A stretch of DNA of 64,000 nt from Neoechinorhynchus agilis. Taxonomy: Eukaryota; Animalia; Acanthocephala. The DNA lies in the NCBI GenBank assembly GCA_051530055.1, contig CM121341.1:4690784-4754783 (forward strand). Direction: 5' to 3'. Below are positions 14,901 through 43,957 of the stretch, one piece after another. The first letter of the stretch is position 1. Every line of letters starts with the position of its first letter. The notes below the pieces were generated by a model. That model was not told the DNA's origin. It was given only the letters and a program-made list of their open reading frames with translations, and searched no databases. The position numbers and the translations under genes were made by a program.

Positions 14901-17900
14901 ATTGTTTACCCCAGCGTTCTGATTTGGCGCCGCTATTTCGTGTTGTTGGTAGAAACCCGCCGTCGTCATGTTTTGTGGATCGGTGAATGGAGCACAAGCC
15001 GCTTGCTGGCCCTGCAAGTGCACTGAATATCCTTGTTGTTCGTGTGGAACTCTATTGTTTACGTCAGCGTTCTGATTTGGCGCCGCTATTTCGTGTTGTT
15101 GATAGAAACCCGATGTTGCCATGTTTTGTGGATCGGTGATAGGAGCACAAGCCGCTTGCTGATCCTGCAAGTGCATTGAATATCCTTGTTGTTCGCGTGG
15201 ATCCTCATTGTTTACCCCAGTGTTCGGATGAGGTGCCGCAATTTCGTATTGTTGATAGAAACCCGCCGTCGCCATGTTTTGTGGCTCGGTGATTGGAGCA
15301 CAAGCCGCTTGCTGATCCTGCAAGTGCATTGAATATCCTTGCTGTTCGCTTGGATCTTCATTGTTTACCTCAGTGTTCTGATTTGGCGCCGCTATTTGTT
15401 GATAGAAACCCGATGTCGCCATATTTTGTTGATCGGTGAATGGAGCACAAGCCGCTTGCTGGCCCTGGGAGTTTATTGAATATCCTTGTTGTTCGCGTAG
15501 AACTTCATTGTTTACCCCAGTGTTCTGATTAGGTGCCGCTATTTGTTGTTGATAGAAACCCGCCGTCGCCATGTTTTGTGGATCGGTGACTGGAGCACAA
15601 GCCGCTTGCTGGCCCTGCAAGTTTATTGAATGTCCTTGTTGTTCACGTAGACCGTCATTGTTTATCCCGGTGTTCGTATTGGGTGCCGCTATTTCGTATT
15701 GTTGATAGAAACCCGCCGTCGCCATGTTTTGTGGATCGGTGACTGGAGTACAAGCCGCTTGCTGGCCCTGCAAGTTTATTGAATGTCCTTGTTGTTCACG
15801 TAGACCGTCATTGTTTATCCCGGTGTTCGTATTGGGTGCCGCTATTTCGTATTGTTGATAGAAACCCGCCGTCGCCATGTTTTGTGGATCGGTGACTGGA
15901 GCACAAGCCGCTTGCTGGCCCTGCAAGTGCATTGAATATCCTTGCTGTTCAGGTGGATCTTCATTGTTTACCCCAGCGTTCTGATTTGGCGCCGCTATTT
16001 CGTGTTGTTGGTAGAAACCCGCCGTCGTCATGTTTTGTGGATCGGTGAATGGAGCACAAGCCGCTTGCTGGCCCTGCAAGTGCATTGAATATCCTTGCTG
16101 TTCAGGTGGATCTTCATTGTTTACCCCAGCGTTCTGATTTGGCGCCGCTATTTCGTGTTGTTGGTAGAAACCCGCCGTCGTCATGTTTTGTTGATCGGTG
16201 AACTGAGCACAAGCCGCTTGCTGGCCCTGCAAATGCACTGAATATCCTTGTTGTTCGCGTTGAACTCTATTGTTTACGTCAGCGTTCTGATTTGGCGCCG
16301 CTATTTCGTGTTGTTGATAGAAACCCGATGTTGCCATGTTTTGTGGATCGGTGATAGGAGCACAAGCCGCTTGCTGGCCCTGCAAGTTTATTGAATATCC
16401 TTGCTGTTCGGGTGGAACTCTATTGCTTACTCCAGTGTTCTGATTTGGCGCCGCTATTTCTTGTTGTTGATAGAAACCCGATGTTGCCATATTTTGTGGA
16501 TCGGTGAATGGAGCACAAGCCGCTTGCTGGCCCTGCAAGTGCATTGAATATCCTTGCTGTTCGGGTGGATCTTCATTGTTTACCCCAGCGTTCTGATTTG
16601 GCGCCGCTATTTCGTGTTGTTGGTAGAAACCCGCCTTCGTCATGTTTTGTGGATCGGTGAATGGAGCACAAGCCGCTTGCTGGCCCTGCAAGTGCACTGA
16701 ATATCCTTGTTGTTCACGTAGAACGTCATTGTTTATCCCAGTGTTCTGATTAGGTGTCGCTACTTGTTGATAGAAACCCGCCGTCGTCATGTTTTGTGGA
16801 TCGGTGAATGGAGCACAAGCCGCTTGCTGGCCCTGCAAGTTTATTGAATATCCTTGTTGTTCACGTAGAACGTCATTGTTTATCCCAGTGTTCTGATTAG
16901 GTGTCGCTACTTGTTGATAGAAACCCGCCGTCGCCATGTTTTGTGGATCGGTGACTGGAGCACCAGCCGCTTGCTGGCCCTGCAAGTTTATTGAATGTCC
17001 TTGTTGTTCACGTAGACCGTCATTGTTTATCCCAGTGTTCTGATTAGGTGTCGCTACTTGTTGATAGAAACCCGCCGTCGCCATGTTTTGTGGATCGGTG
17101 ACTGGAGCACCAGCCGCTTGCTGGCCCTGCAAGTTTATTGAATGTCCTTGTTGTTCACGTAGAACGTCATTGTTTATCCCAGTGTTCTGATTAGGTGTCG
17201 CTACTTGTTGATAGAAACCCGCCGTCGCCATGTTTTGTGGATCGGTGACTGGAGCACCAGCCGCTTGCTGGCCCTGCAAGTTTATTGAATATCCTTGTTG
17301 TTCACGTAGAACTTCATTGTTTACCCCAGTGTTCGGATTGGGTGCCGCTGTTTCGATTGTTGATAGAAACCCGCCGTCGCCATGTTTTGTGGATCGGTGA
17401 CTGGAGCAGAAGCCGCTTGCTGGCCCTGCAAGTTTATTGAATGTCCTTGTTGTTCACGTAGACCGTCATTGTTTACCCCAGTATTCTGATTAGGTGTCGC
17501 TACTTGTTTATAGAAACCCGCCGTCGAAATGTTTTGTGGATCGGTGACTGGAGCACAAGCCGCTTGCTGGCCCTGCAAGTTTATTGAATATCCTTGTTGT
17601 TCGCGTGGAACTCTATTGTTTACGTCCGGGTTCGAATTGGGTGCCACTACTTGGTGTTGTTGATGGAAACCCGCTGCCGCCATGTTTTGTTGATCGGTGA
17701 ATGGAGCACAATCCGCTTGCTGGCCCTGCAAGTTTATTGAATATCCTTGTTGTTCGCGCGGAACTCTATTGTTTACATCAGCGTTCTGATTAGGTGCCGC
17801 TATTTGGTGTTGAGGATAGTAATCCGCGGTTGCTATGTTTTGTTGATCGGTGAATAGAGCACAAGCCGCTTGCTGGCCCTGCAAATTCATTGAATATCCT

Positions 17901-19571
17901 CGTTGTTCGTGTGAAACTCTATTGTTTACGTCAGCGTTCTGATTCGGTGCCACTACTTGGTGTTGTTGATGGAAACACGCTGCCGCCATGTTTTGTTGAT
18001 CGGTGAATGGAGCACAATCCGCTTGCTGGCCCTGCAAGTTTATTGAATATCCTTGTTGTTCGCGCGGAACTCTATTGTTTACGTCAGCGTTCTGATTAGG
18101 TGCCGCTATTTGGTGTTGAGGATAGTAACCCGCGGTTGCTATGTTTTGTTGATCGGTGAATAGAGCACAAGCCGCTTGCTGGCCCTGCAAGTTCATTGAA
18201 TATCCTTGTTGTTCGCGTGAAACTCTATTGTTTACGTCAGCGTTCTGATTAGGTGCCACTATTTGGTGTTGTTGATGGAAACCCGCTGCCGCCATGTTTT
18301 GTTGATCGGTGAATGGAGCACAAGCCGCTTGCTGGCCCTGCAAGTGCATTGAATATCCTTGTTTTTCGCGTAGAGCTCTGTTGTTTACGTCAGCGCTCTG
18401 ATTAGGTGCCGCTACTTGGTGTTGTTGATGGAAACCCGCTGCCGCCATGTTTTGTTGATCGGTTAATGGAGCACAAGCCGCTTGCTGGCCATGCAAGTGC
18501 ATTGAATATCCTTGTTGTTCGCGTGAAAAAAAAATCCTTGTTTTCCGACTCTTTGTTTACTCACAACCCATTGGTGTTGTTGATGGAAACCCGCTCCTAA
18601 TGAGCACAAGCCGCTTGCTGGCCATGCAAGTGCATTGAATATCCTTGTTGTTCGCGTGAAAATCTATTGTTTACTTCGGCGTTCTGATTAGGAGCCACTA
18701 TTTGGTGTTGAGGATAGTAGCCCGCGGTTGCCATGTTTTGTCGATCGGTACCACTAATCATTCGAACAGGATTTGCCATCAATGTAGGATGTATGTTTTG
18801 GCCACTATTTCCAAAATTTAATCGTTCTGTTGGCGGTTGTTGTTCTTGCTGCCATTGTTGCTGATATTGAGCAGGCTGTTGTTGGTTGTTCATCTGAGTT
18901 CCGTAGTTATGCACTCCCGATGGTTCTTGGGCATTTTGCAATGTTCCAATATTTTGGAGAGCTGGGTTATGGTAAATGTTTTGCGGATTGCCACTTCCTT
19001 GAATAAAATTCTGAGCTGTCATCATGGGATTTGGCTGTTGCATTTGCTGCGTGCCGTAAAAGTGACCCGTATTGCCGGCCAATTGTTGGAGATTTTGGTT
19101 TTGGAAGGCATTTGCATTGCTTACCGGACCGAAATTTTGTTGGAAATGCCCTTGCACATTCGGGTTGTAGAAATTTCCTTGAGCATACGGTGCCATAACA
19201 GCGGCTCCATTTCCACCAGCCGCAACAGCATATGGTACGGCGCCATCGTAGGTAAGATTTTGAGCTTGAACTTCGTCCCTTTTCCTTAAACGACCATCCT
19301 TGTAGCTTCTATTGACAGCCCAGTGCATTCCTTTAGGACCCTGAGATACTCTCACATGTATAAACTTCCTGCTCACAGATAATGTATGGCGAACTGAGTT
19401 TTTCCAACTTTTTACTTCCTCTTCGTCAGTTATTGCGGCAAAATATGGATAATTCTGTTTAAAATAATCGTAGATCTTTTTCAGTGGCAGTGTGCGATTG
19501 GGAGCGTTGTTGATCGCCATCTTCGCTATTTCAGAGATGCTTATGTCTCCCCACGCATTTGGTCTCGGCAT
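11974..19571 (-). CDS. FOXO-like: Divergent FoxO-type forkhead protein, copy A, with about 33 Q/N-rich repeats; three frame breaks (pseudogene or assembly errors)
   Basis: RPNAWGDISISEIAKMAI...YPYF...WKNSVRHTLS..RKFIHV...HW aligns with FoxO RRNAWGNLSY...VPYF...WKNSIRHNLS..SKFIRV, including the FoxO-type H2-H3 insert. ORFs 18597-19571, 17321-18502, 14181-17279 and 11974-14271 are colinear with intact copy B. Confidence 0.85.
13700..18740 (-). repeat. Coding tandem repeat (150/153-bp unit, 50-51 aa) in copy A
   Basis: Approximate consensus REQQGYSMHLQGQQAACAPFTDPQNMATAGFYQQHEIAAPNQNADVNNRVP. Confidence 0.97.
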
Positions 19572-23953: not shown

Positions 23954-24502
23954 ATGTCTCGTGAAATGAAAATGTACGATAAAAAATCGATTGAAACAAA
24001 ATATTTACACGATTACCCGGAATATCGTGAAAGCGTCATCGAATTGCTTAAGAACCAATGGCCAAAGGAGAATCATCGGCTAACCGTCTGCTTGACCAAA
24101 GATAGTCTTTCTTGGCCCCAAGGTTTGGTGGTTGTCGATCTTCATAAAAACGATGTAAGAGCGTATTGTCAAGCGGATCTCGATACGATCGAGTACGCAG
24201 GTTGTTCGAGCCGATCTGCTTTCGTTGAATACTTATGTGTCAGACCAGGTTTTAGGGAAAAGGGTCTTGGTACTTCATTATTGCTCCAAATGGAGTCGTT
24301 ATTCGTGAATGAAATGGTTGAATGTGTGTTTCTAATAACTGACGAAGCAGAATTGTTTTACACGAAGCTCGGATATCAGCGATGTAACCAAGACCCTGTT
24401 TTCAAGTCTAATGAAGCCTTGTCCAGACGTGTAAATGCAGCTCTTTTGCTTGATAGCGAATCAACGATTAAAATGAGGACTTTTATGTACAAGAAGCTTT
24501 GA
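23954..24502 (+). CDS. NAA80: GNAT acetyltransferase, NAA80/NAT6-like
   Basis: H..PE...LLKNQWP...R...L...WP at the N-terminus, acetyl-CoA motif A VRPGFREKGLG, and FLITDEAELFYTKLGY, as in actin N-acetyltransferase NAA80. Confidence 0.75.
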   Translation: MSREMKMYDKKSIETKYLHDYPEYRESVIELLKNQWPKENHRLTVCLTKDSLSWPQGLVVVDLHKNDVRAYCQADLDTIEYAGCSSRSAFVEYLCVRPGFREKGLGTSLLLQMESLFVNEMVECVFLITDEAELFYTKLGYQRCNQDPVFKSNEALSRRVNAALLLDSESTIKMRTFMYKKL

Positions 24503-26925: not shown

Positions 26926-27250
26926 TCACGTGTTCACGCGACTTTCCTTTCGTTCTCCATTTTGGTTATTAAACTCGTCAATTTCGGAAACGAATTGAAT
27001 GTCAGAATTATGTTCAAGCGATTTCTCCCCGCTCATCATGAAGAAATTCAAATTTGACGATTTCACTACGATTGCCGTGAGTACTGGCGATTTGTTAAGG
27101 CTGCATTTCAGCGGCACTTCGAGTTTCACTCTCCTCTGATTATACTCCAATCGTTCTCCGGTCAGAGGAGATTTCCGCTGTCGTAATGTTTTGTGGATCG
27201 GTGACTGGAGCACAAGCCGCTTGCTGGCCCTGCAAGTTTATTGAATATCC
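26926..27250 (-). pseudogene. FoxO-like relic C: last coding repeat joined to a deleted C-terminal region
   Basis: 27181-27250 is a coding-type repeat. 27100-27180 matches copy B (KSHLTGERLENNQ). 26990-27100 matches copy A (STHGNLSKIVK...QHNSDIEF). Confidence 0.85.
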
Positions 27251-30200
27251 TTATTGTTCGTGTGCAACTTCATTGTTTACGTCATGTTCTGAATCAATGC
27301 GGCGATTTATTGTCGCAGAAAGATACGAGCGGTGTCACTTTATTGTTTTTCTGTAACTACAACACAATTTTCTTGCTTTGCCGTCAAGTGCATTGAATAT
27401 TCTTATTGTTCGTGTGCAACTTCATTGTTTACGTCATGTTCTGAATCAATGCGGCTATTTATTGTCGCAGAAAGATACGAGCGGTGTCACTTTATTGTTT
27501 TTCTGTAACTACAACACAATTTTCTTGCTTTGCCGTCAAGTGCATTTAATATTCTTATTGTTCGTGTGCAACTTCATTGTTTACGTCATGTTCTGAATCA
27601 ATGCGGCTATTTATTCCCGCAGATAGATACGAGCGGTGTCACTTTATTGTTTTGCGCTAACTAAAACACAATTTTCTTGCTTTGCCGTCAAGTGCATTGA
27701 ATATCCTTATTGTTCGTGTGCAACTTCATTGTTTACGTCATGTTCTGAATCAATGCGGCTATTTATTGTCGCAGATAGATACGAGCGGTGTCACTTTATT
27801 GTTTTTCTGTAACTACAACACAATTTTCTTTCTTTGCCGTCAAGTGCATTGAATATTCTTATTGTTCGTGTGCAACTTCATTGTTTACGTCATGTTCTGA
27901 ATCAATGCGGCGATTTATTGTCGCAGAAAGATACGAGCGGTGTCACTTTATTGTTTTTCTGTAACTACAACACAATTTTCTTGCTTTGCCGTCAAGTGCA
28001 TTTAATATTCTTATTGTTCGTGTGCAACTTCATTGTTTACGTCATGTTCTGAATCAATGCGGCTATTTATTCCCGCAGATAGATACGAGCGGTGTCACTT
28101 TATTGTTTTGCGCTAACTAAAACACAATTTTCTTGCTTTGCCGTCAAGTGCATTGAATATCCTTATTGTTCGTGTGCAACTTCATTGTTTACGTCATGTT
28201 CTGAATCAATGCGGCTATTTATTGTCGCAGATAGATACGGGCGGTGTCACTTTATTGTTTTTCTGTAACTACAACACAATTTTCTTTCATTGCCGTCAAG
28301 TGAATTGAATATTCTTATTGTTCGTGTGCAACTTCATTGTTTACGTCATGTTCTGAATCAATGCGGCTATTTATTCCCGCAGATAGATACGAGCGGTGTC
28401 ACTTTATTGTTTCTCTGTAACTACAACACAATTTTCTTGCTTTGCGGTCAAGTGCATTTAATATTCTTATTGTTTGTGGTCAACTTCATTGTTTACGTCA
28501 TGTTCTGAATCAATGCGGCGATTTATTGTCGCAGATAGATACGGGCGGTGTCACTTTATTGTTTCTCTGTAACTACAACACAATTTTCTTGCTTTGCGGT
28601 CAAGTGCATTTAATATTCTTATTGTTTGTGGTCAACTTCATTGTTTACGTCATGTTCTGAATCAATGCGGCTATTTATTCCCGCAGATAGATACGAGCGG
28701 TGTCACTTTATTGTTTTTCGCTAACTACAACACAATTTTCTTGCTTTGCCGTCAAGTGCATTGAATATCCTTATTGTTCGTGTGCAACTTCATTGTTTAC
28801 GTCATGTTCTGAATCAATGCGGCTATTTATTGTCGCAGAAAGATACGGGCGGTGTCACTTTATTGTTTTTCTGTAACTACAACACAATTTTCTTTCATTG
28901 CCGTCAAGTGAATTGAATATTCTTATTGTTCGTGTGCAACTTCATTGTTTACGTCATGTTCTGAATCAATGCGGCTATTTATTGTCGCAGATAGATACGA
29001 GCGGTGTCACTTTATTGTTTTTCTCTAACTACAACACAATTTTCTTGCTTTGCCGTCAAGTGCATTTAATATTCTTATTGTTCGTGTGCAACTTCATTGT
29101 TTACGTCATGTTCTGAATCAATGCGGCTATTTATTGTCGCAGATAGATACGGGCGGTGTCACTTTATTGTTTTTCTGTAACTACAACACAATTTTCTTGC
29201 TTTGCCGTCAAGTGCATTGAATATTCTTATTGTTCGTGTGCAACTTCATTGTTTGCGTCATGTTCTGAATCAATGCGGCTATTTATTCCCGCAGATAGAT
29301 ACGAGCGGTGTCACTTTATTGTTTCTCTGTAACTACAACACAATTTTCTTGCTTTGCGGTCAAGTGCATTTAATATTCTTATTGTTTGTTGCAACTTCAT
29401 TGTTTACGTCATGTTCTGAATCAATGCGGCTATTTATTCTCGCAGATAGATACGAGCGGTGTCACTTTATTGTTTCTCTGTAACTACAACACAATTTTCT
29501 TGCTTTGCGGTCAAGTGCATTTAATATTCTTATTGTTTGTGGTCAACTTCATTGTTTACGTCATGTTCTGAATCAATGCGGCGATTTATTGTCGCAGATA
29601 GATACGGGCGGTGTCACTTTATTGTTTCTCTGTAACTACAACACAATTTTCTTGCTTTGCCGTCAAGTGCATTTAATATTCTTATTGTTCGTGTTCAACT
29701 TCATTGTTTACGTCATGTTCTGAATCAATGCGGCGATTTATTGTCGCAGATAGATACGAGCGGTGTCACTTTATTGTTTCTCTGTAACTACAACACAATT
29801 TTCTTGCTTTGCGGTCAAGTGCATTTAATATTCTTATTGTTTGTGGTCAACTTCATTGTTTACGTCATGTTCTGAATCAATGCGGCTATTTATTCCCGCA
29901 GATAGATACGAGCGGTGTCACTTTATTGTTTTGCGCTAACTAAAACACAATTTTCTTGCTTTGCCGTCAAGTGCATTGAATATCCTTATTGTTCGTGTGC
30001 AACTTCATTGTTTACGTCATGTTCTGAATCAATGCGGCTATTTATTGTCGCAGAAAGATACGGGCGGTGTCACTTTATTGTTTTTCTGTAACTACAACAC
30101 AATTTTCTTGCTTTGCCGTCAAGTGCATTGAATATCCTTATTGTTCGTGTGCAACTTCATTGTTTACGTCATGTTCTGAATCAATGCGGCTATTTATTGT

Positions 30201-33200
30201 CGCAGAAAGATACGGGCGGTGTCACTTTATTGTTTTTCTGTAACTACAACACAATTTTCTTTCATTGCCGTCAAGTGCATTGAATATCCTTATTGTTCGT
30301 GTGCAACTTCATTGTTTACGTCATGTTCTGAATCAATGCGGCTATTTATTGTCGCAGAAAGATACGGGCGGTGTCACTTTATTGTTTTTCTGTAACTACA
30401 ACACAATTTTCTTTCATTGCCGTCAAGTGCATTGAATATTCTTATTGTTCGTGTGCAACTTCATTGTTTACGTCATGTTCTGAATCAATGCGGCGATTTA
30501 TTGTCGCAGATAGATACGGGCGGTGTCACTTTATTGTTTTTCTGTAACTACAACACAATTTTCTTGCTTTGCCGTCAAGTGCATTGAATATCCTTATTGT
30601 TCGTGTGCAACTTCATTGTTTACGTCATGTTCTGAATCAATGCGGCTATTTATTGTCGCAGAAAGATACGGGCGGTGTCACTTTATTGTTTTTCTGTAAC
30701 TACAACACAATTTTCTTTCATTGCCGTCAAGTGCATTGAATATTCTTATTGTTCGTGTGCAACTTCATTGTTTACGTCATGTTCTGAATCAATGCGGCGA
30801 TTTATTGTCGCAGAAAGATACGAGCGGTGTCACTTTATTGTTTTTCTGTAACTACAACACAATTTTCTTGCTTTGCCGTCAAGTGCATTTAATATTCTTA
30901 TTGTTCGTGTGCAACTTCATTGTTTACGTCATGTTCTGAATCAATGCGGCTATTTATTGTCGCAGAAAGATACGAGCGGTGTCACTTTATTGTTTTTATG
31001 TAACAACAACACAATTTTCTTGCTTTGCCGTCAATTGCATTTAAAATTCTTATTGTTCGTGTGCCACTTCATTGTTTACGTATGTTCTGAATCAATGCGG
31101 CTATTTATTCCCGCAGATAGATACGAGCGGTGTCACTTTATTGTTTTGCGCTAACTAAAACACAATTTTCTTGCTTTGCCGTCAAGTACATTGAATATCC
31201 TTATTGTTCGTGTGCAACTTCATTGTTTACGTCATGTTCTTAATCAATGCGGCTATTTATTCCCGCAGATAGATACGAGCGGTGTCACTTTATTGTTTTG
31301 CGCTAACTAAAACACAATTTTCTTGCTTTGCCGTCAAGTGCATTGAATATCCTTATTGTTCGTGTGCAACTTCATTGTTTACGTCATGTTCTGAATCAAT
31401 GCGGCTATTTATTGTCGCAGAAAGATACGGGCGGTGTCACTTTATTGTTTTTCTGTAACTACAACACAATTTTCTTTCATTGCCGTCAAGTGAATTGAAT
31501 ATTCTTATTGTTCGTGTGCAACTTCATTGTTTGCGTCATGTTCTGAATCAATGCGGCTATTTATTCCCGCAGATAGATACGAGCGGTGTCACTTTATTGT
31601 TTCTCTGTAACTACAACACAATTTTCTTGCTTTGCGGTCAAGTGCATTTAATATTCTTATTGTTTGTGGTCAACTTCATTGTTTACGTCATGTTCTGAAT
31701 CAATGCGGCGATTTATTGTCGCAGATAGATACGGGCGGTGTCACTTTATTGTTTCTCTGTAACTACAACACAATTTTCTTGCTTTGCCGTCAAGTGCATT
31801 GAATATTCTTATTGTTCGTGTGCAACTTCATTGTTTACGTCATGTTCTTAATCAATGCGGCTATTTATTCCCGCAGATAGATACGAGCGGTGTCACTTTA
31901 TTGTTTTTCGCTAACTAAAACACAATTTTCTTGCTTTGCCGTCAAGTGCATTGAATATCCTTATTGTTCGTGCGCAACTTCATTGTTTACGTCATGTTCT
32001 GAATCAATGCGGCTATTTATTGTCGCAGAAAGATACGGGCGGTGTCACTTTATTGTTTTTCTGTAACTACAACACAATTTTCTTTCATTGCCGTCAAGTG
32101 CATTGAATATTCTTATTGTTCGTGTGCAACTTCATTGTTTACGTCATGTTCTGAATCAATGCGGCTATTTATTGCCGCAGATAGATACGAGCGGTGTCAC
32201 TTTATTGTTTTTCGCTAACTACAACACAATTTTCTTGCTTTGCCGTCAAGTGCATTTAATATTCTTATTGTTCGTGTGCAACTTCATTGTTTACGTCATG
32301 TTCTGAATCAATGCGGCGATTTATTGTCGCAGAAAGATACGAGCGGTGTCACTTTATTGTTTCTCTGTAACTACAACACAATTTTCTTTCATTGCCGTCA
32401 AGTGCATTTAATATTCTTATTGTTTGTGGTCAACTTCATTGTTTACGTCATGTTCTGAATCAATGCGGCGATTTATTGTCGCAGAAAGATACGAGCGGTG
32501 TCACTTTATTGTTTTGCTGTAACTACAACACAATTTTTTTCATTGCCGTCAAGTGAATTGAATATTCTTATTGTTCGTGTGCAACTTCATTGTTTACGTC
32601 ATGTTCTGAATCAATGCGGCTATTTATTGTCGCAGATAGATACGAGCGGTGTCACTTTATTGTTTTTCTGTAACTACAACACAATTTTCTTTCATTGCCG
32701 TCAAGTGCATTTAATATTCTTATTGTTCGTGTGCAACTTCATTGTTTACGTCATGTTCTGAATCAATGCGGCGATTTATTGTCGCAGAAAGATACGAGCG
32801 GTGTCACTTTATTGTTTCTCTGTAACTACAACACAATTTTCTTTCATTGCCGTCAAGTGCATTTAATATTCTTATTGTTTGTGGTCAACTTCATTGTTTA
32901 CGTCATGTTCTGAATCAATGCGGCGATTTATTGTCGCAGATAGATACGGGCGGTGTCACTTTATTGTTTTTCTGTAACTACAACACAATTTTCTTTCATT
33001 GCCGTCAAGTGCATTGAATATTCTTATTGTTCGTGTGCAACTTCATTGTTTACGTCATGTTCTGAATCAATGCGGCTATTTATTCCCGCAGATAGATACG
33101 AGCGGTGTCACTTTATTGTTTTTCGCTAACTAAAACACAATTTTCTTGCTTTGCCGTCAAGTGCATTGAATATTCTTATTGTTCGTGTGCAACTTCATTG

Positions 33201-34737
33201 TTTACGTCATGTTCTGAATCAATGCGGCGATTTATTGTCGCAGAAAGATACGGGCGGTGTCACTTTATTGTTTTTCTGTAACTACAACACAATTTTCTTT
33301 CATTGCCGTCAAGTGCATTTAATATTCTTATTGTTCGTGTGCAACTTCATTGTTTACGTCATGTTCTGAATCAATGCGGCTATTTATTCCCGCAGATAGA
33401 TACGAGCGGTGTCACTTTATTGTTTTTCGCTAACTACAACACAATTTTCTTGCTTTGCCGTCAAGTGCATTGAATATTCTTATTGTTCGTGTGCAACTTC
33501 ATTGTTTACGTCATGTTCTGAATCAATGCGGCGATTTATTGTCGCAGAAAGATACGAGCGGTGTCACTTTATTGTTTTTCTGTAACTACAACACAATTTT
33601 CTTTCATTGCCGTAAAGTGCATTGAATATTCTTATTGTTCGTGTGCAACTTCATTGTTTACGTCATGTTCTGAATCAATGCGGCTATTTATTGTCGCAGA
33701 TAGATACGAGCGGTGTCACTTTATTGTTTTTCGCTAACTACAACACAATTTTCTTGCTTTGCCGTCGATTGCATTTAATATTCTTATTGTTCGTGTGCAA
33801 CTTCATTGTTTACGTCATGTTCTGAATCAATGCGGCTATTTATTGTCGCAGAAAGATACGGGCAGTGTCACTTTATTGTTTTTCGCTAACTACAACACAA
33901 TTTTCTTTCATTGCCGTCAAGTGAATTGAATATTTTTATTGTTCGTGTGCAACTTCATTGTTTACGTCATGTTCTGAATCAATGCGGCGATTTATTGTCG
34001 CAGATAGATACGAGCGGTGTCACTTTATTGTTTTTCGCTAACTACAACACAATTTTCTTACTTTGCCGTCAAGTGCATTTAATATTCTTATTGTTCGTGT
34101 GCAACTTCATTGTTTACGTCATGTTCTGAATCAATGCGGCTATTTATTGTCGCAGAAAGATACGGGCGGTGTCACTTTATTGTTTTTCGCTAACTACAAC
34201 ACAATTTTCTATCATTGCCGTCAAGTGCATTTAATATTCTTATTGTTCGTGCGCAACTTCATTGTTTACGTCATGTTCTGAATCAATGCGGCTATTTATT
34301 GTCGCAGATAGATACGAGCGGTGTCACTTTATTGTTTTTCGCTAACTACAACACAATTTTCTATCATTGCCGTCAAGTGCATTGAATATTCTTATTGTTT
34401 GTGGTCTACTTCATTGTTTACGTCATGTTCTGAATCAATGCGGCGATTTATTTTCGCAGATAGATACGAGCGGTGTCACTTTATTGTTTTTCTGTAACTA
34501 CAACACAATTTTCTATCATTGCCGTAAAGTGCATTGAATATTCTTATTGTTCGTGTACAACTTCATTGTTTACGTCATGTTCTGAATCAATGCGGCTATT
34601 TATTGTCGCAGAAAGATACGAGCAGTGTCACTTTATTGTTTTTCTGTAACTAAAACACAATTTTCTTGCTTTGCCGTCAAGTGCATTGAATATTCTTATT
34701 GTTTGTGGTCAACTTCATTGTTTACGTCATGTTCTGA
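27251..34737. repeat. 152-bp satellite, block 1 (about 49 units)
   Basis: Unit TTGCCGTCAAGTGCATTGAATATTCTTATTGTTCGTGTGCAACTTCATTGTTTACGTCATGTTCTGAATCAATGCGGCTATTTATTGTCGCAGATAGATACGAGCGGTGTCACTTTATTGTTTTTCGCTAACTACAACACAATTTTCTTGCT. The period is also visible in ORF-track spacings of 152, 304 and 456 bp. Confidence 0.99.
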
Positions 34738-34830
34738 TGATGTGCCATAGTTTTGTTCATCGGCTTTAAATCTGCTCCTTTTCTTTTTTCTTCTGTGACT
34801 GGTGAACAAGTTGCTTATTGTGCCGACACT
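34738..34830 (-). pseudogene. Short relic resembling the last degenerate repeats of copy A
   Basis: TCTGTGACTGGTGAACAAGTTGCTT resembles TCTGTGACTGGAACACCAGTTGCTT near 13797. AAATCTGCTC resembles the sequence near 13658. Confidence 0.5.
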
Positions 34831-35109
34831 GAAATGAATGTCTGTATGGTTGTAGCGGAAGGTTGATGTTCGCGACAAGTACGCATTTGAATTGTAATTT
34901 ATCTACTCAATTTTTAGATCGTATCTTAAAGGGGGAAAATGCGTTTTAAAGATTCGAATGAAGTTTATACAAATAGAGATAAGAAACATCAAAAAGCTAA
35001 ATATTTTAAACTTCAATTTGCAAAATTTATAGTATGAATCTTTAGTCTTGCACAGTAGACATGCAACATTGTATTGGTTCGCCAGCGGAAAAATAACAAT
35101 GATTTTTAT

Positions 35110-38100
35110 TTAGTCGTCGCTTAATATCTGGTTTAACAAATTATCTTCATCGGAGTCTTCATCGCTGTCAAATTGACTCTCCTCTGGATTTCCGTTTGTA
35201 TTATTAGTCGCGTCATTTTCCTGGTCCTCCTCGGTGTTATCGTTTTTCCTCGGACTGTCAGCGATCCCCAACGCTGCTCGTATCGCGTCCTCTAGTTGAA
35301 GAGTTTCAGCATCCTTTGGTTTTCGTATTACCTCCGCCGGTGGTTCGGATGGTGGTAATTCCTCACGAACGGATTGGGGTGTCATCTCGCCACCTTCAGA
35401 ATAATCTTCTTCTTCGGATTGTTCTCCTTCTGGAGTGCAAGGGCGAAAAAGTATGTTTTCTAGGAACATGTTAACAGTTTGATTAGCATCAACGCTCATA
35501 TAGCTTTCGGCCGGACTGGTAGCCGAAGCGCTTGACGATAGATTAAGTTCCTCTATCGATCGAGGATATTCTAAAATGTACTGCGCGAGCGTTGCCTCGT
35601 CGAACTGAGATGATCCGTTAAATTGATCCTTTGTTTCAACTCCAACTGGAATGGGTATATGTTGCTCAGATTCAAATTGTTCATTGATCTTGTGATATTG
35701 TTGGTGGTGTTCAGTTTGGGGCTCCTGCTGGTTTATCGGTCCAAAGTTAACATCGGGAGAAAAATTGAAGTTATCACGATCGTTGTCTGGCGCTTCAAAT
35801 GAAAAATAGTGCTCGTGTTCGACGTTTGGCCGACGATATCTATCTAAATCTTCATTGGCAATCTCATATCTATCAGCCGACAATGTATTAAATATAGTCC
35901 CCCTTTGCTCATCGTGTAGATTTACGGTGTCATCCAGCTGCAGTTCAGCGGCACTTCGAGTTTCATTCTCTGCTCTAATCTGATTATTTTCTAATCGTTC
36001 TCCGGTCAGATGAGATTTCTGCTCGTTTAGCAACCGGAAATTTTCTTGGTAATCCTCATCATTAAGCCCAACTTTATCCGAAAAATTACGCTGGTTGCTT
36101 TCGTGTGCCCCCTTGATTTCAGCTTCAATATTTGGTTCAGGACACATCTTTTGCTTTTTAGGTGGATGACATTCCGAAACGTCGTGTGTCCTTTTAGTGC
36201 TTTGTTTATCGGAAAAAATTTGGTGGCTCCGTATTGATTTTTGTTCACACATCTGCTCATTCGACTTCGCCGTTTCATCAGTTACCTTATTCGAGGACAG
36301 ATCTGCTCCTTGATAGTTTTGTACGCCCGTCATATTTTCTCTTTGCGTACAATTAATTTTTTGCATTTTGCTTAATTCCTTATAATTATCGGTGCCTTCA
36401 TATTGCCTTTTCATTGCTGTTATTGAATTTTGATTGAATCGTTTTTGGCCACTCGCCGATCGATCATCGCCATCCTTATTGATCATTGAAGCACAGTTCA
36501 TTGAATATCCTTGCTGTTCGCGTGGAACTTCATTCTTAACCTCAGTGTTCTGATTTGGCGCCGCTATTTCGTGTTGTTGATAAAAATGCGCCGTCGTAAT
36601 GTTTTGTGGATCGGTGACTGGAGCATAAGCCGCTTGCTGGCCTTGCAAGTGCATTGAATATCCTTGCTGCTCGCGTTGATCTTCATTGTTAACCTCAGTG
36701 TTCAGATTTTGCGCCGCTATTTCGGTTTGTTGATAGAAACCTACCGTCGCCATGTTTTGTGGTTCGCTGATTGGAGCACAAGCCGCTTGCTGGCCCTGCA
36801 AGTTTATTGAATATCCTTGCTGTTCGCGTGGATCTTCATTGTTTACCCCAGTGTTCGGATTTGGCGCCGTTATTTCGGTTTGTTGATAGAAACCCGCTGC
36901 CGTCATGTTTTGTGGATTGGTTACTGGAGCACGAGCCGCTTGCTGATCCTGCAAGTACATTGAATATCCTTGTTGTTCGCGTTGAACTTCATTGTTTACC
37001 CAAGTGTTCGGATTTGGAGCCGCTATTTCGGTTTCTTGATAGAAACCCACCGTCGCCATGTTTTGTGGTTCGGTGATTGGAGCGCAAGCCGCTTGCTGAT
37101 CCTGCAAGTGCATTGAATATCCTTGCTGTTCGCGTGGATCTTCATTGTTAACCTCAGTGTTCGGATGAGGTGCCGCAATTTCGTATTGTTGGTGGAAACC
37201 CACCGTCGCCATGTTTTGTAGTTCGGTGATTGGAGCACAAGCCGCTTGCTGATCCTGCAAGTGCATTGAATATCCTTGTTGTTCGCGTGGATCTTCATTG
37301 TTAACCTCAGTGTTCGGATTTGGCGCCGTTATTTCGGTTTGTTGATAGAAACCCGCTGCCGTCATGTTTTGTGGATTGGTTACTGGAGCACAAGCCGCTT
37401 GCTGATCCTGCAAGTGCATTGAATATCCTTGCTGTTCGCGTGGAACTTCATTGTTTACCCCAGTGTTCGGATTTGGCGCCGCTATTTCGGTTTGTTGATA
37501 GAAACCCACCGTCGCCATGTTTTGTGGTTCGCTGATTGGAGCACAAGCCGCTTGCTGATCCTGCAAGTGCATTGAATATCCTTGTTGTTCGCGTTGATCT
37601 TCATTGTTAACCTCAGTGTTCTGATTTGGCGCCGCTATTTCGTGTTGTTGATAGAAACCCACCGTCGCCATGTTTTGTGGTTCAGTGATTGGAGCACAAG
37701 CCGCTTGCTCATCCTGCAAGTGCATTGAATATCCTTGTTGTTCGCGTTGATCTTCATTGTTAACCTCAGTGTTCTGATTTGGCGCCGCTATTTCGTGTTG
37801 TTGATAGAAACCCACCGTCGCCATGTTTTGTGGTTCAGTGATTGGAGCACAAGCCGCTTGCTCATCCTGCAAGTGCATTGAATATCCTTGTTGTTCGCGT
37901 TGATCTTCATTGTTAACCTCAGTGTTCTGATTTGGCGCCGCTATTTCGTGTTGTTGATAGAAACCCACCGTCGCCATGTTTTGTGGTTCAGTGATTGGAG
38001 CACAAGCCGCTTGCTCATCCTGCAAGTGCATTGAATATCCTTGTTGTTCGCGTTGATCTTCATTGTTAACCTCAGTGTTCTGATTTGGCGCCGCTATTTC

Positions 38101-41100
38101 GTGTTGTTGATAGAAACCCACCGTCGCCATGTTTTGTGGTTCAGTGATTGGAGCACAAGCCGCTTGCTCATCCTGCAAGTGCATTGAATATCCTTGTTGT
38201 TCGCGTTGATCTTCATTGTTTACCTCAGTGTTCTGATTTGGCGCCGCTATTTCGTGTTGTTGATAGAAACCCACCGTCGCCATGTTTTGTGGTTCAGTGA
38301 TTGGAGCACAAGCCGCTTGCTGATCCTGCAAGTGCATTGAATATCCTTGTTGTTCGCGTTGAACTTCATTGTTTACCCCAGTGTTCGGATTTTGCGCCGC
38401 TATTTCGTTTTGTTGATAGAAGCCCACCGTCGCCATGTTTTTTGGTTCGGTAATTGGAGCACAAGCCGCTTGCTGATCCTGCAAGTGCATTGAATATCCT
38501 TGCTGTTCGCGATGATCTTCATTGTTAACCTCAATGTTCTGATTTGGCGCCGCTGTTTCGTTTTGTTGATAAAAACGTGCTGTTGCCATGTTTTGGTGTT
38601 CGGTGATTCGAGCACATACCGCTTGTTCGGCCGGTAAGTTTATTGAATATCCTCGCTGTTCGCGTGGAACTTCATTGTTTACCTCAGTATTCTGATTGGG
38701 TGCCACTATTTGGCGTTTTTGATAGAAACTCGCCGCCGTCGTGGTTTGTTGATCGGTGAATTGAGCACAAACCGCTTGTTGGGCTTGCAAATGCATCGAA
38801 TATCCTTGCTGTTCGCGTGGAACTTCATTGTTTACCCCAATGTTCTGATTGGGTTCCGCTATTTTGTGTTGTTGATAGAAACCCGCTGCCGTCATGTTTT
38901 GTGGATTGGTTACTGGAGCATAAGCCGCTTGCTGGCCCCGCGAGTTCATTGAATATCCTTCTTGTTCGCTTGGAACTCTATTGTTTACGTCAGTGTTCCG
39001 ATGTGGCCCCGCTATTTGGTGTTGTTGATGGATACCCGCTGTCGCCATGCTTTGTTGATCGGTGGCTGGAGCGCAAGGCATTTGTTTGGTTTGCAAGTGC
39101 ATTGAATATCCTTGTTGTTCGCGTTGAACTCTATTGTTTGCGTCAGCGTTCTGATTAGGTGCCACTACTTGGTTTTGTTGATAGAAACCCGCTGCTGCCA
39201 TGTTTTGTTGATCGGATGCTGGAGTGCAAGGCATTTGTTGGCCCTGCAAGTTCATTGAATATCCTTGTTGTTCGCGTTGAACTCTACTGTTTACGTCCGG
39301 GTTCGAATTGGGTGCCATTACTTGGTATTGTTGATAGAAACCCGCTGCCGCCATGGTTTGTTGATCGGTTAATGGAGCACAAGTCGCTTGCTGGCCCTGC
39401 AAGTTCATTGAATATCCTTGTTGTTCGCGTGGAACTCTATTGTTTACGTCAGCGTTCTGATTAGGTGCCGCTATTTGGTGTTGTTGATGGAAACCCGCTG
39501 CCGCCATGTTTTGTTGATCGTTGAATGGAGCACAAACTCCTTGCTGGCCCTGCAAGTTCATTGAATATCCTTGTTGTTCACGTGAAACTCTATTGTTTAC
39601 GTCAGCGTTCTGATTAGGTGCCGCTATTTGGTGTTGTTGATGGAAACCCGCTGCCGCCATGTTTTGTTGATCGTTGAATGGAGCACAAACTCCTTGCTGG
39701 CCCTGCAAGTTCATTGAATATCCTTGTTGTTCACGTGAAACTCTATTGTTTACGTCAGCGTTCTGATTAGGTGCCGCTATTTGGTGTTGTTGATGGAAAC
39801 CCGCTGCCGCCATGTTTTGTTGATCGTTGAATGGAGCACAAACTCCTTGCTGGCCCTGCAAGTTCATTGAATATCCTTGTTGTTCACGTGAAACTCTATT
39901 GTTTACGTCAGCGTTCTGATTAGGTGCCGCTATTTGGTGTTGTTGATGGAAACCCGCTGCCGCCATGTTTTGTTGATCGTTGAATGGAGCACAAACTCCT
40001 TGCTGGCCCTGCAAGTTCATTGAATATCCTTGTTGTTCACGTGAAACTCTATTGTTTACGTCAGCGTTCTGATTAGGTGCCGCTATTTGGTGTTGAGGAT
40101 AGTAACCCGCGGTTACCATGTTTTGTTGATCGGTGAATGGAGCACAAACTCCTTGCTGGCCCTGCAAGTTCATTGAATATCCTTGTTTTTCGCGTTGAAC
40201 TCTATTGTTTACGTCCGGGTTCTGATTGGGTGCCGCTATTTGGTGTTGTTGATTGAAACCCGCTGCCGCCATGTTTTGTTGATCGGTGAATGGAGCACAA
40301 GCCGCTTGCTGGCCCTGCAAGTGCATTGAATATCCTTGTTTTTCGCGTAGAGCTCTATTGTTTACGTCAGCGCTCTGATTATGTGCCACTACTTGGTGTT
40401 GTTGATGGAAACCCGCTGCCGCCATGCTTTGTTGATCGGTGAATGGAGCACAAGCCGCTTGCTGGCCCTGCAAGTGCATTGAATATCCTTGTTGTTCGCG
40501 TGCAACTCTATTGTTTACGTCAGCGTTCTGATTAGGTGCCACTACTTGGTTTTGTTGGTAGAAACCCGCTGCTGCCATGTTTTGTTGATCGGTGAATGGA
40601 GCACAAACCGCTTGTTGGCCTTGCAAGTGCATTGTAAATCCTTGTTGTTCGCGTGAAACTGTATTGTTTACGTCAGCGTTCTGGTTAGGTGCCGCTATTT
40701 GGTGTTGAGGATTGTAACTCGCGGTTGCCATGTTTTGTTGATCGGTGAATGGAGCACAAGCCGCTTGCTGGCCCTGCAAGGGCATTGAATATCCTTGTTG
40801 TTCGCGTGAAAATCTATTGTTTACGTCGGCGTTCTGATTAGGTGCCACTATTTGGTGTTGAGGATAGTAGCCCGCGGTTGCCATGTTTTGTCGATCGGTA
40901 CCACTAATCATTCGAACAGGATTTGCCATCAATGTAGGATGTATGTTTTGGCCACTATTTCCCAAATTTAATCGTTCTGTTGGCGGTTGTTGTTCTTGCT
41001 GCCATTGTTGCTGATATTGAGCAGGCTGTTGTTGGTTGTTCATCTGAGTTCCGTAGTTATGCACTCCCGATGGGTCTTGGGCATTTTGCAATGTTCCAAT

Positions 41101-41721
41101 ATTTTGGAGAGCTGGGTTATGGTAAATGTTTTGCGGATTGCCGTTTCCTTTAATAAAATTCTGAGCTGTCATCATGGGATTTGGCTGTTGCATTTGCTGC
41201 GTGCCGTAAAAGTGACCCGTATTGCCGGCCAATTGTTGGATATTTTGGTTTTGGAAGGCATTTGCATTGGTTATCGGACCCAAATTTTGTTGGAAATGTC
41301 CAAGCACATTCGGGTTGTAGAAATTTCCTTGAGCATACGGTGCCATCACAGCGGCTCCATTTCCACCCGCTGCAACATCATTTGGTACGGCACCATCGTA
41401 GGTAAGATTTTTAGCTTGAAATTCGTCCCTGTTCCTTAAACGACCATCCTTGTTGCCTCCATTGATGGCCCAGTGCATTCCATTTGGGCCCTGGGATACT
41501 CTTACCAGTGTAAACTTGTTGCTCGCAGATAATTTATGACGAACATAGTTTTGCCAATTTTTTACTCCCTCTTCGTCAGTTATTGCGGCAAAATATGGAT
41601 AATTCTGTTTAAAATAATCGTAGATCTTTTGTAGTGGCAGTGTGCGATTAGGAGCGTTGCTGATCGCCAACCTGGCTATTTCGGAAATGCTTATATCTCC
41701 CCACGCATTTTGTCTCGGCAT
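35110..41721 (-). CDS. FOXO-like: Divergent FoxO-type forkhead protein, copy B, intact 2203 aa, about 29 Q/N-rich repeats, acidic C-terminus
   Basis: Single uninterrupted ORF. N-terminal forkhead domain RQNAWGDISISEIARLAI...WQNYVRHKLS...HW. Confidence 0.92.
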   Translation of the reverse strand: MPRQNAWGDISISEIARLAISNAPNRTLPLQKIYDYFKQNYPYFAAITDEEGVKNWQNYVRHKLSASNKFTLVRVSQGPNGMHWAINGGNKDGRLRNRDEFQAKNLTYDGAVPNDVAAGGNGAAVMAPYAQGNFYNPNVLGHFQQNLGPITNANAFQNQNIQQLAGNTGHFYGTQQMQQPNPMMTAQNFIKGNGNPQNIYHNPALQNIGTLQNAQDPSGVHNYGTQMNNQQQPAQYQQQWQQEQQPPTERLNLGNSGQNIHPTLMANPVRMISGTDRQNMATAGYYPQHQIVAPNQNADVNNRFSREQQGYSMPLQGQQAACAPFTDQQNMATASYNPQHQIAAPNQNADVNNTVSREQQGFTMHLQGQQAVCAPFTDQQNMAAAGFYQQNQVVAPNQNADVNNRVAREQQGYSMHLQGQQAACAPFTDQQSMAAAGFHQQHQVVAHNQSADVNNRALREKQGYSMHLQGQQAACAPFTDQQNMAAAGFNQQHQIAAPNQNPDVNNRVQREKQGYSMNLQGQQGVCAPFTDQQNMVTAGYYPQHQIAAPNQNADVNNRVSREQQGYSMNLQGQQGVCAPFNDQQNMAAAGFHQQHQIAAPNQNADVNNRVSREQQGYSMNLQGQQGVCAPFNDQQNMAAAGFHQQHQIAAPNQNADVNNRVSREQQGYSMNLQGQQGVCAPFNDQQNMAAAGFHQQHQIAAPNQNADVNNRVSREQQGYSMNLQGQQGVCAPFNDQQNMAAAGFHQQHQIAAPNQNADVNNRVPREQQGYSMNLQGQQATCAPLTDQQTMAAAGFYQQYQVMAPNSNPDVNSRVQREQQGYSMNLQGQQMPCTPASDQQNMAAAGFYQQNQVVAPNQNADANNRVQREQQGYSMHLQTKQMPCAPATDQQSMATAGIHQQHQIAGPHRNTDVNNRVPSEQEGYSMNSRGQQAAYAPVTNPQNMTAAGFYQQHKIAEPNQNIGVNNEVPREQQGYSMHLQAQQAVCAQFTDQQTTTAASFYQKRQIVAPNQNTEVNNEVPREQRGYSINLPAEQAVCARITEHQNMATARFYQQNETAAPNQNIEVNNEDHREQQGYSMHLQDQQAACAPITEPKNMATVGFYQQNEIAAQNPNTGVNNEVQREQQGYSMHLQDQQAACAPITEPQNMATVGFYQQHEIAAPNQNTEVNNEDQREQQGYSMHLQDEQAACAPITEPQNMATVGFYQQHEIAAPNQNTEVNNEDQREQQGYSMHLQDEQAACAPITEPQNMATVGFYQQHEIAAPNQNTEVNNEDQREQQGYSMHLQDEQAACAPITEPQNMATVGFYQQHEIAAPNQNTEVNNEDQREQQGYSMHLQDEQAACAPITEPQNMATVGFYQQHEIAAPNQNTEVNNEDQREQQGYSMHLQDQQAACAPISEPQNMATVGFYQQTEIAAPNPNTGVNNEVPREQQGYSMHLQDQQAACAPVTNPQNMTAAGFYQQTEITAPNPNTEVNNEDPREQQGYSMHLQDQQAACAPITELQNMATVGFHQQYEIAAPHPNTEVNNEDPREQQGYSMHLQDQQAACAPITEPQNMATVGFYQETEIAAPNPNTWVNNEVQREQQGYSMYLQDQQAARAPVTNPQNMTAAGFYQQTEITAPNPNTGVNNEDPREQQGYSINLQGQQAACAPISEPQNMATVGFYQQTEIAAQNLNTEVNNEDQREQQGYSMHLQGQQAAYAPVTDPQNITTAHFYQQHEIAAPNQNTEVKNEVPREQQGYSMNCASMINKDGDDRSASGQKRFNQNSITAMKRQYEGTDNYKELSKMQKINCTQRENMTGVQNYQGADLSSNKVTDETAKSNEQMCEQKSIRSHQIFSDKQSTKRTHDVSECHPPKKQKMCPEPNIEAEIKGAHESNQRNFSDKVGLNDEDYQENFRLLNEQKSHLTGERLENNQIRAENETRSAAELQLDDTVNLHDEQRGTIFNTLSADRYEIANEDLDRYRRPNVEHEHYFSFEAPDNDRDNFNFSPDVNFGPINQQEPQTEHHQQYHKINEQFESEQHIPIPVGVETKDQFNGSSQFDEATLAQYILEYPRSIEELNLSSSASATSPAESYMSVDANQTVNMFLENILFRPCTPEGEQSEEEDYSEGGEMTPQSVREELPPSEPPAEVIRKPKDAETLQLEDAIRAALGIADSPRKNDNTEEDQENDATNNTNGNPEESQFDSDEDSDEDNLLNQILSDD
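36490..40880 (-). repeat. Coding tandem repeat (153-bp unit) in copy B
   Basis: Same unit family as in copy A, with runs of near-identical units at about 37550-38250 and 39450-40050. Confidence 0.97.
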
Positions 41722-42024: not shown

Positions 42025-43957
42025 TTACACTCAATAAGCCATCATCACGTATTTTGGAATTCGGATCATAAGGTCCAGAATATTGGATTGAGGATTGTTG
42101 TGCAGAGTTTTCCTATCTATAGTTTATGTCGTCTTTTATTTAAATTTACAATTATGCATCTTAGTCTCTATACTTAAAGTAAACATACTTTCTCGATTGT
42201 TTCTTTAATTTGCGTTTCAATCACTAAAATTAAGAAGAGTCTAGGTTAGAATTGTTTTTAGAAAGTAGATCACATTCAAAAGATTTGGTATGGTTAATTT
42301 GAGTAATAAGAAAAATATAGATGCATTGGATGGGGACGGATCCGTAAACCAGTTAAACACGAATATTCTAATATAGAATTCGGTATTTGGCGTTCATATT
42401 CGGTGTACTGATCCACAAGGCGACTCGGAAATAAATCGGTGACTTATCGCTAATGAGTTGTAATGATGCCTAAACAACGACAAGAATGGAATTACTTTGC
42501 TAATAGCAAAAACTTTCAAACACACAATAAATTTGATTCCACAAATGTTATTAATAAATCGTTTTATTTCAGGGAACATCAGGTATCTATTGAAACTTGT
42601 AAGTTTTGGGTGTTCCATCTTTGCAGCTACAAAACGTTAGCTGTTGATTGTCGTTTTCCGCTCTCTAGCTTTTGTATTAGTTGAGTTGGCTTTGGTCGGT
42701 TAATTTATAGTTGTTTTCCGCTCTTTCCTCTGAATCATTTCGCATTTGGCCGATTAAGCGCTGGAGACGAAGGTAGAGATTTTTGCGAGGAATTGAAGGA
42801 TGGAAAGTGTTGGGACGATGAGTGTTATAAGTGTAAGTAAAAGGATAAATGTGTGGTAGAAATTGAAGAGGCGGAAGAGAATGAAGGTGTTTTGAGTGCT
42901 TTTGAGATTTGAGAGAGGTGTTCTTCTACGAGTTTGGGGGAGCAGATTAGAGTGAACCTCCATTGTGAAATGTATTAAGTATTTTGGAAAAAGGTTAGAA
43001 GGAAAATTGCAGAAGGTTAGAAGAGCGTAGGTGAGCGTTGGTAGGATCACACGGACATATAAAAGTACTTAAGGTCTTTGGATGATAATCCGAGGAGTCG
43101 GAGGCGTTTAAGAAGATAGAGCTTAATGGATCCCTTGTGCAACAAAATTGATATGTGCTTCTTCTATAGATTTTTCTGAAAATAAAGACCAAGTATACGA
43201 ACAGAGGAGACACGATTGATAGGAAAAGGAAAAAGTGGCTGATCGGAAGGACTATTTGAGATTCAGGGGACGATTTCAAAGCACTTCGTTAAGTTAAGGG
43301 TAAAACATTTAGGGGAGCAAAATTCTTGAACGTGAGAAATCTCGTTAGGAGTAATTGAGAGTGAGACGGAGGATACCGGTACATCCGTAATGATTATAAG
43401 ATCACCCGCATACAAGACGTATTTAGAATAAAAAGAGAATGAAATAAGATCGGTTAGGAAAATGTTGAAAGGAATGGGGAAGAGAACAGTCCGTTCGAGA
43501 ACTCCTTTGTTGATTGCTAAGGTATTCGAGACGATGCTGCCTATTTTGGTAAATTGTAATCGATTGTTTAGAAAGGAATTAAACCATTTGATTTGCCAGG
43601 CGACAAAAATAAATTTAGAGCATGTATCAAGGAGAAGATTTTGATCAACGGAATCAAAAGCTTTATGAATGTCAATTTGGATGAGTCGAGAGATAAATAA
43701 AGGTTTTGCGTCGAGATAATGAAGAACGCGTCGGTACAGAAGCCGGGCCGGTAACCGAATTGAATGGATGAAATTTTTCGATTGAAGATTGGCAGAAGGT
43801 GTGCTTTAAAGCATCTCTCTAAGATTTTAGAGAAGGAATCTAAGTTAGAGATGGGTCGAAAACTTGAGGTGGATATAAGTTCACCTGCTTTCGGGAGCAG
43901 AGTTACCCGATCTCTTTTTGGGCAATTATGGAAGATTCCGGTCTTGAAACTTTGGTT
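42025..43957. repeat. Segmental duplication, copy 2, including a truncated copy of the LINE (about 42670-43957)
   Basis: Matches 20031-21986 and breaks off at ACTTTGGTT, where the satellite resumes. Confidence 0.95.

Follow-up and report, generated by a model that had tools for sequence, protein, structure and literature searches.

A 152-bp satellite DNA of Neoechinorhynchus agilis, an eoacanthocephalan fish parasite, was found to be homologous over its full length to a 153-bp repeat that encodes 51 amino acids (aa) inside forkhead-domain genes. Both lie in a stretch of 64,000 nucleotides (hereafter the window) of chromosome CM121341.1 (19.4 Mb) in assembly GCA_051530055.1. The satellite takes the place of the repeats in a third forkhead paralogue that has died (psi-gene 3). 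We consider it probable that it is a non-coding offshoot of the coding repeat, that it was amplified in this slot, and that the joint between gene-type and satellite-type sequence was formed later. Together with the window, two other loci were read (about 110 kb altogether), namely the unplaced contig JBMGUZ010000032.1 (L002) and the chromosome at 9.71–9.74 Mb (L003).

The satellite and its coding counterpart

Tandem arrays were located with Tandem Repeats Finder (TRF), paralogy was established by blastn, and domains were compared with Pfam. Two kinds of tandem array were detected in the window by TRF, with 153-bp units inside genes and 152-bp units outside them. The features on which the argument rests are listed below, with their open reading frames (ORFs) where present.

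11974..19571, minus strand: forkhead paralogue 1 (gene 1), four ORFs split by three frame breaks
13833..18525, minus strand: coding repeat array 1, inside gene 1, 31 copies of 153-bp units (TRF)
26974..27179, minus strand: decayed remnant of the C-terminus of a third paralogue of the forkhead family (psi-gene 3), from blastn, tblastn and three-frame translation
27175..27232, minus strand: coding-type partial unit, phase 96–153, between the psi-gene 3 relic and the satellite
27233..27384, minus strand: chimeric first unit, gene-1-type CAAGTTTATTGAATATCCTT to 27252 and satellite-type from 27253, diagnostic pattern Csss...
27233..34737, minus strand: satellite array 1, 152 bp, 49.4 copies, 94% matches, 0% indels, ending at phase 60 (TRF)
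34738..34905, minus strand: decayed repeat units that continue satellite array 1 in register, from phase 61 onward to about phase 55–80
35110..41721, minus strand: forkhead paralogue 2 (gene 2), an intact single ORF of 2203 aa
36495..40899, minus strand: coding repeat array 2, inside gene 2, 28.8 units, all 153 bp (TRF)
43957..60569, minus strand: satellite array 2, the same 152-bp family, about 109 copies, from phase 55 to phase 10 (TRF)

To obtain consensus units for the satellite and coding classes, 206 repeat units were extracted in register. The two consensus units aligned end to end with 104–110 of 153 positions identical (68–72%) and a single 1-bp gap, which bears out the alignment proposed in a first-pass annotation of this DNA. 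The global alignment score was 65, compared with −14.5 ± 3.7 for dinucleotide shuffles with every rotation tried (z = 21.4), so the alignment passed the shuffling control which that annotation had suggested. On this sequence comparison, the homology of satellite and coding repeat is certain. In the old gene frame, the satellite reads ..DVNNEVAHEQ*EYSMHL.. and TAKQENCVVVTEKQ*SDTARIYLRQ*IAA.., reproducing the earlier reading ..VNNEVAHEQ*EYSMHL.. with its TAA stops and 1-bp loss. Each satellite unit contains three TAA stops, which replace Gln (CAA), Asn (AAC), and Glu (GAA) codons, and has lost 1 bp, which shifts the frame. More than 220 units in three arrays carry identical fixed differences.

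The satellite arrays extend over 7.5 kb and 16.6 kb in the window and at least 9.6 kb on contig JBMGUZ010000032.1, and the consensus of array 2 is 97.4% identical to that of array 1. Mean pairwise divergence in satellite array 1 was 5.3%, and satellite divergence was ~5% at every lag, both within and between arrays. Satellite units differed from any coding unit by 27–37%; none was intermediate, and the array cores contained no mosaics. The satellite is one homogenised family that has undergone concerted evolution. Every unit carries stops in all three gene-strand frames, the plus-strand ORFs are no longer than 140 aa, and a search of the protein collection for these plus-strand ORFs found none. 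The satellite is non-coding. Its units are 152, 151, 150, 149 or 147 bp long, showing indels of any size. It has the properties of a satellite DNA, namely a head-to-tail monomer, long arrays (~100 copies), a non-coding state, and homogenisation. TRF also reported periods of 304 and 456 bp, and a higher-order repeat was rejected since identity was independent of lag. A conserved box at satellite phase 34–68 (pi 0.005) was rejected as well, because this stretch is merely free of subfamily polymorphisms and variation is concentrated at 17 sites. Scans of metagenome contigs for satellite-type and coding-type patterns gave no matches.

The genes that carry the 153-bp repeat form a small tandem family of lineage-specific forkhead-domain genes in the window. 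Genes 1 and 2 share a layout of an N-terminal Forkhead domain, the 51-aa repeats, and an acidic tail (..DSDEDSDEDNLLNQIL..). The Forkhead domain (PF00250, residues 10–90) scored 55.5 bits (E = 6e-15), above the Pfam cut-off of 27 bits. The central region of each gene consists of 15–31 copies of the 153-bp (51-codon) repeat, which is rich in Gln and Asn; the lowest copy number belongs to a fourth paralogue on contig JBMGUZ010000032.1, with an ORF of 1488 aa and 15 coding units (gene 4). Units in coding array 1 measured 153 bp (17 units), 147 bp (eight units), 150 bp (one unit), and 152 bp (one unit). No stops were observed in the coding units, compared with 6.5 expected (P = 0.0013, listed for coding array 2). 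Within the coding arrays of genes 1, 2, and 4, divergence between units grew with distance along the array. The frame breaks of gene 1 are at about 18500–18600, 17280–17320, and 14180–14270, and perfect repeats resume in another frame after each of them; gene 1 is either a very recent pseudogene or affected by indel errors of long reads. One of its pieces is annotated by NCBI as hypothetical protein ACOME3_000977. A 93-bp piece of its C-terminal coding region (12394–12486) is duplicated just downstream of the gene, at 11714–11806, with 88% identity.

A word-indexed search of 5.8 billion proteins returned no credible homologue of the N-terminal region or the 51-aa repeat outside N. agilis, and an exhaustive HMMER search of 1.8 billion representatives likewise gave no credible outside homologue, just weak low-complexity matches. 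When relatives of named FOX classes were sought in the word-indexed search, only N. agilis proteins were returned.

Edges of satellite array 1 and copies elsewhere

On its left side, satellite array 1 is preceded by the psi-gene 3 relic, which is 81.8% identical to gene 1 at 12067–12208 (E 1e-33) and 82.8% identical to gene 2 at 35937–36023 (E 3e-20) by blastn. The relic has the same orientation as genes 1 and 2, and its reading is interrupted by frameshifts and a stop. The partial unit that follows (27175–27232) matches the coding consensus at 54 of 58 positions (z = 29) and has the coding state at all diagnostic sites. Extended by the following 28 bp, it differs from the gene-1 unit at 17518–17603 at 3 of 86 positions (96.5% identity). 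This unit runs in register into the unit at 27233, which agrees with the earlier description of a coding-type unit that passes into the satellite at 27181–27260, and the switch from coding type to satellite type is completed within about 20 bp. Its 3 differences from gene 1 in 86 positions compare with 26 in 143 (18%) for the adjoining C-terminal relic (p = 0.0008, Fisher's exact test).

On the right side, the decayed units at 34738–34905 (~170 bp) aligned locally to the coding repeat with z = 6.7 and to the satellite with z = 7.6. Where their diagnostic sites depart from the satellite, the coding state was found in 16 cases compared with 9.1 expected (p = 0.004, corrected for composition). 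The homology between genes 1 and 2 starts at 34906, and the decayed units lie outside it. From the stop codon of gene 2 to array 1 the distance is 373 bp. With the relic and the coding-type partial unit on the left and the decayed units on the right, both edges of array 1 are more gene-like than its core. Because a C-terminal relic lies on the left and gene-type units are found on both sides, array 1 stands where a truncated, dead gene had its repeats. Satellite array 2 has no flanking gene relics.

The first-pass annotation had regarded the joint as a preserved junction. The joint is real and in register, but it is abrupt, 96.5% gene-1-like, and is no graded fossil of a birth. The abrupt switch and the very different distances from gene 1 (3/86 for the junction, 26/143 for the relic, ~30% for the satellite) suggest that the joint is later than the satellite lineage. 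Judging from these sequence distances, the junction is probably not an untouched birthplace; it more likely arose afterwards, through in-register recombination or conversion that involved a gene-1-type unit. In the simplest reading, the satellite lineage would predate the junction, and an exchange in register would later have created or renewed the joint; the monomer that founded the family could already have been chimeric. Since neither class showed conversion tracts, we rejected the idea that satellite and genes still exchange sequence.

The satellite is also present outside the window. On contig JBMGUZ010000032.1, the C-terminal region of the fourth paralogue, its 3' flank, and the first two satellite units are about 99.3–99.5% identical to the window (99.5% to 36494–34738 for the C-terminal region and flank). 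The same joint is found there, followed by at least 63 satellite units. The near-identity spans only two satellite units and then drops to the family background, which indicates that array interiors turn over faster than flanks. The upstream part of this contig matches L003, and gene collinearity is lost after about 590 bp. From this comparison, the gene-plus-satellite module has another copy, either at a second locus or on another haplotype, and the break between L003 and L002 is either a structural variant between haplotypes or a misassembly. In the comparison of L003 at position 10590 (CM121341.1 at about 9.725 Mb) with L002, the shared upstream sequence holds a TMEM208 gene and an 88-bp satellite, and the forkhead gene of the chromosome copy is annotated as a protein of 198 aa. 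L002 (2599–6705) and L003 (2757–6705 and 1–783) contain two unrelated tandem arrays, one of 88-bp units in about 45 copies and one of 136-bp units.

Direction of change and alternative origins

The direction from coding repeat to satellite is favoured, not proven. It is favoured by the gene relics at both edges of array 1. It is also favoured by the fixed differences between the two classes, which comprise 22 GC>AT and 4 AT>GC changes. The GC content of the satellite (0.37) equals that of the local non-coding background, and that of the coding units is 0.48. The indels also point this way, since those of the coding units are multiples of 3, while satellite indels have any length; the coding units also have no stops. 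Over the first 57 bp, the 1-bp deletion and three GC>AT transitions are all that separates the satellite from the coding pool; one of the transitions creates a TAA stop and one is at a CpG. This, too, argues for the same direction. Transitions account for just 12 of 38 fixed differences, and mutation resembling repeat-induced point mutation (RIP) was rejected on that ground.

The course of events that we consider most probable is as follows. One paralogue, psi-gene 3, would have died, losing its 5' part while its C-terminus decayed. In its repeat slot, a variant with a 1-bp deletion and premature stops may have been freed from the open reading frame. Unequal exchange or replication slippage presumably then multiplied and homogenised it until the arrays held between 49 and more than 109 units. 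Carried along in modules of gene and flank, these arrays would have reached one or more further loci, and the joint at 27175–27260 would have been made later by recombination or conversion with a gene-1-type unit.

Several results weigh against this reading. A neighbour-joining tree without outgroup included 62 distinct coding units from three genes, and the satellite clade branched outside every one of them, set apart by a long stem (0.25). With the satellite outside all extant coding units, this phylogeny of units, which the first-pass annotation had proposed, fixed neither root nor direction. The direction which that annotation had put forward is favoured by the slot of the dead paralogue and the GC>AT bias, but it is unpolarised in this genome alone. 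Jukes–Cantor distances were 0.35 overall between satellite and coding repeat, compared with 0.04 for the junction unit and 0.21 for the psi-gene relic, and this mismatch does not fit a simple in-place decay of psi-gene 3. Differences were also unevenly spread along the unit (5/54 in phase 1–54 vs 37/98 in the rest, p = 1e-4, Fisher's exact test), so a chimeric founder unit or local constraint is needed. Within the coding arrays, the non-synonymous to synonymous ratio was 3.0, compared with 3.7 possible, and nucleotide diversity was about equal at the three codon positions; by these measures, amino-acid constraint on the 51-aa repeat appears weak. Weak constraint and the lack of an outside homologue leave room for a non-coding origin of the repeat. 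The small amount of DNA read was likewise counted against the favoured direction. The decayed edge units were tried as an outgroup and rejected, because they are equidistant (55%) from coding repeat and satellite. Terminal, older coding units carry satellite states above chance (p = 0.003–0.017), which fits either rooting.

The satellite could have arisen where it stands now, by decay and expansion of array 1 in place, with 27181–27260 as the untouched original boundary between coding repeat and satellite. The in-register joint beside the C-terminal relic and the decayed units at the opposite edge of array 1 agree with such an origin, but a switch within about 20 bp with no unit of intermediate divergence does not. 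Neutral sequence of the satellite's age would be expected to have diverged as far as the satellite, and the very different distances of junction, relic (p = 0.0008), and satellite contradict this. We therefore regard in-place birth as unlikely. The reverse course, in which the 152-bp satellite came first and a copy gained 1 bp, lost its stops, was exonised into a forkhead gene and spread among the paralogues, seems to us improbable to the same degree. It would account for a repeat and gene family with no detectable homologue outside N. agilis, for the near-equal diversity at codon positions and the near-neutral non-synonymous to synonymous ratio, for the branching of the satellite outside all coding units, and for the excess of satellite states in terminal, older coding units. 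However, it requires three stop removals and a frame-restoring insertion before in-frame amplification between the Forkhead domain and the conserved acidic tail, as well as 22 AT>GC changes vs 4, opposite to the usual mutation bias, and it leaves unexplained the coding-type units on both sides and the C-terminal gene relic.

A coding repeat at another locus, or an older dead copy, may instead have been the source, with the satellite arriving by homology-driven unequal exchange with the psi-gene 3 array. The age mismatch between satellite and junction and the abrupt chimeric unit would suit an arrival of this kind, as would a second occurrence of the satellite, some 5 Mb distant or on an unplaced contig, and the lack of gene relics around array 2. 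The in-register units at 34738–34905, which lie outside the gene 1/gene 2 duplication, suggest an old resident array, though, and no further candidate source was seen in the window and the two other loci; we rate this origin as slightly less likely still than in-place birth or exonisation. Chance similarity or an assembly artefact is very improbable. Tandem repeats are generally hard to assemble and the frame breaks of gene 1 could be read errors, but the alignment stands far above the shuffles (z = 21), the fixed differences recur in more than 220 units of three arrays, and the junction sequence is unique and specific.

Surrounding elements and known sources of satellite DNA

Retroelement fragments with a reverse-transcriptase piece (GC skew +0.29) were found upstream of each forkhead paralogue, at 20033–22118 and 42025–43956 in the window and at 9193–9611 in L002 and L003. 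An RVT_1 fragment is contained in the ORF at 21597–22118. The copy upstream of gene 2 is as follows.

42025..43956, minus strand: retroelement fragment upstream of gene 2, 98.5% identical to 20033–21985 upstream of gene 1 (blastn)

This fragment is cut off at 43956, directly where satellite array 2 begins. The two copies in the window are 98.5% identical, yet the N-termini of the adjacent genes are about 92% identical. Insertion of gene 2 as a 9.2-kb block into a single array was suggested by the array phases (60/55) and a shared TTCTGA, as a 6-bp duplication. It was rejected, since the decayed units at 34738–34905 continue array 1 in register and array 2 abuts the truncated retroelement, and the shared motif is probably a coincidence.

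Satellite array 2 ends 1.7 kb short of a decayed 28S rRNA fragment (62282–64000, minus strand). ORFs near this fragment had no database record. The fragment scored 844 bits against Rfam LSU_rRNA_eukarya, spans model positions 752–3401 in 1719 nt, and has substitutions at universally conserved positions; by its sequence, it looks like a pseudogene of ribosomal DNA (rDNA). Monomer-like sequence was sought in the array flanks, and none was found in the retroelement or near the 28S fragment. Elsewhere in the window, Ty3/gypsy-type pol ORFs (protease, reverse transcriptase, RNase H, and integrase) at 49–2846 and 2999–4625 are followed by 141-bp and 326-bp short tandem repeats, and an intronless ORF of 182 aa for a GNAT-family acetyltransferase (23954–24502, plus strand) is located between gene 1 and the psi-gene 3 relic.

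Tandem arrays derived from protein-coding genes are represented by Stellate/Su(Ste) of Drosophila and the D4Z4/DUX4 macrosatellites, whose kb-sized units hold the gene or a large fragment of it. Like these, the unit described here would descend from a protein-coding gene; unlike these, it is a single 51-codon intragenic repeat, and its 152 bp fall in the classical satellite size class. Coding minisatellites include the zinc-finger arrays of PRDM9 and the variable number tandem repeats of mucins. The arrays of genes 1, 2, and 4 resemble them in having in-frame units, 15–31 copies, and distance-dependent divergence. To our knowledge, arrays of the PRDM9 or mucin type have not given rise to a separate non-coding satellite family.

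Tandem repeats inside long terminal repeat (LTR) retrotransposons are known to seed satellites, as with the repeats in the 3' untranslated region of Ogre elements in Fabeae (Vondrak et al. 2020, PMC7004042). The N. agilis case is similar in that a short array in a functional unit is accompanied by long homogenised arrays outside it, with monomers homologous over their full length. It differs in that the candidate source is a host protein-coding exon (the 51-codon repeat) and not a non-coding region of a mobile element, and in that spread would have occurred by segmental duplication with the gene and not by transposition. Sub-repeats of rDNA intergenic spacers and elements resembling miniature inverted-repeat transposable elements (MITEs) are further sources (PMC5615363). 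As in satellites from rDNA spacers, sub-repeats of a functional tandem locus would have been released and amplified, but here the candidate source is translated, and the reading frame would have been lost through the 1-bp deletion and the TAA stops. The 28S fragment near array 2 has no sequence link to the satellite monomer. The candidate source is neither a mobile element nor an rDNA spacer, as the repeat lies inside the 2203-aa host Forkhead ORF.

Two reviews of satellite origins (PMC5615363, PMC12692304) trace satellites to spacers of rDNA, to transposable elements, and to MITE-like elements and do not name protein-coding exons; the more recent of them, from 2025 (PMC12692304), does not mention exons or protein-coding genes as satellite sources. 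A targeted literature search for a satellite born from a coding exon found no such case. Satellites and forkhead genes do not come up in the published account of the N. agilis genome and transcriptome. The process proposed here, release and amplification of an internal tandem repeat, is a known one, and the class of source would be new.

The birth of a satellite can seldom be traced, as its source has usually vanished or can no longer be recognised. In this case, a span of 50 kb contains in-frame repeats of living paralogues (the likely source), the remains of a dead paralogue, decayed units at array edges, and a homogenised satellite, and the steps of the birth are therefore open to testing. 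If the satellite did come from the coding repeat, coding minisatellites of duplicated genes would be a further source of satellite DNA. If the reverse is true, a protein repeat domain would have been born from satellite DNA, with the satellite still adjacent to it.

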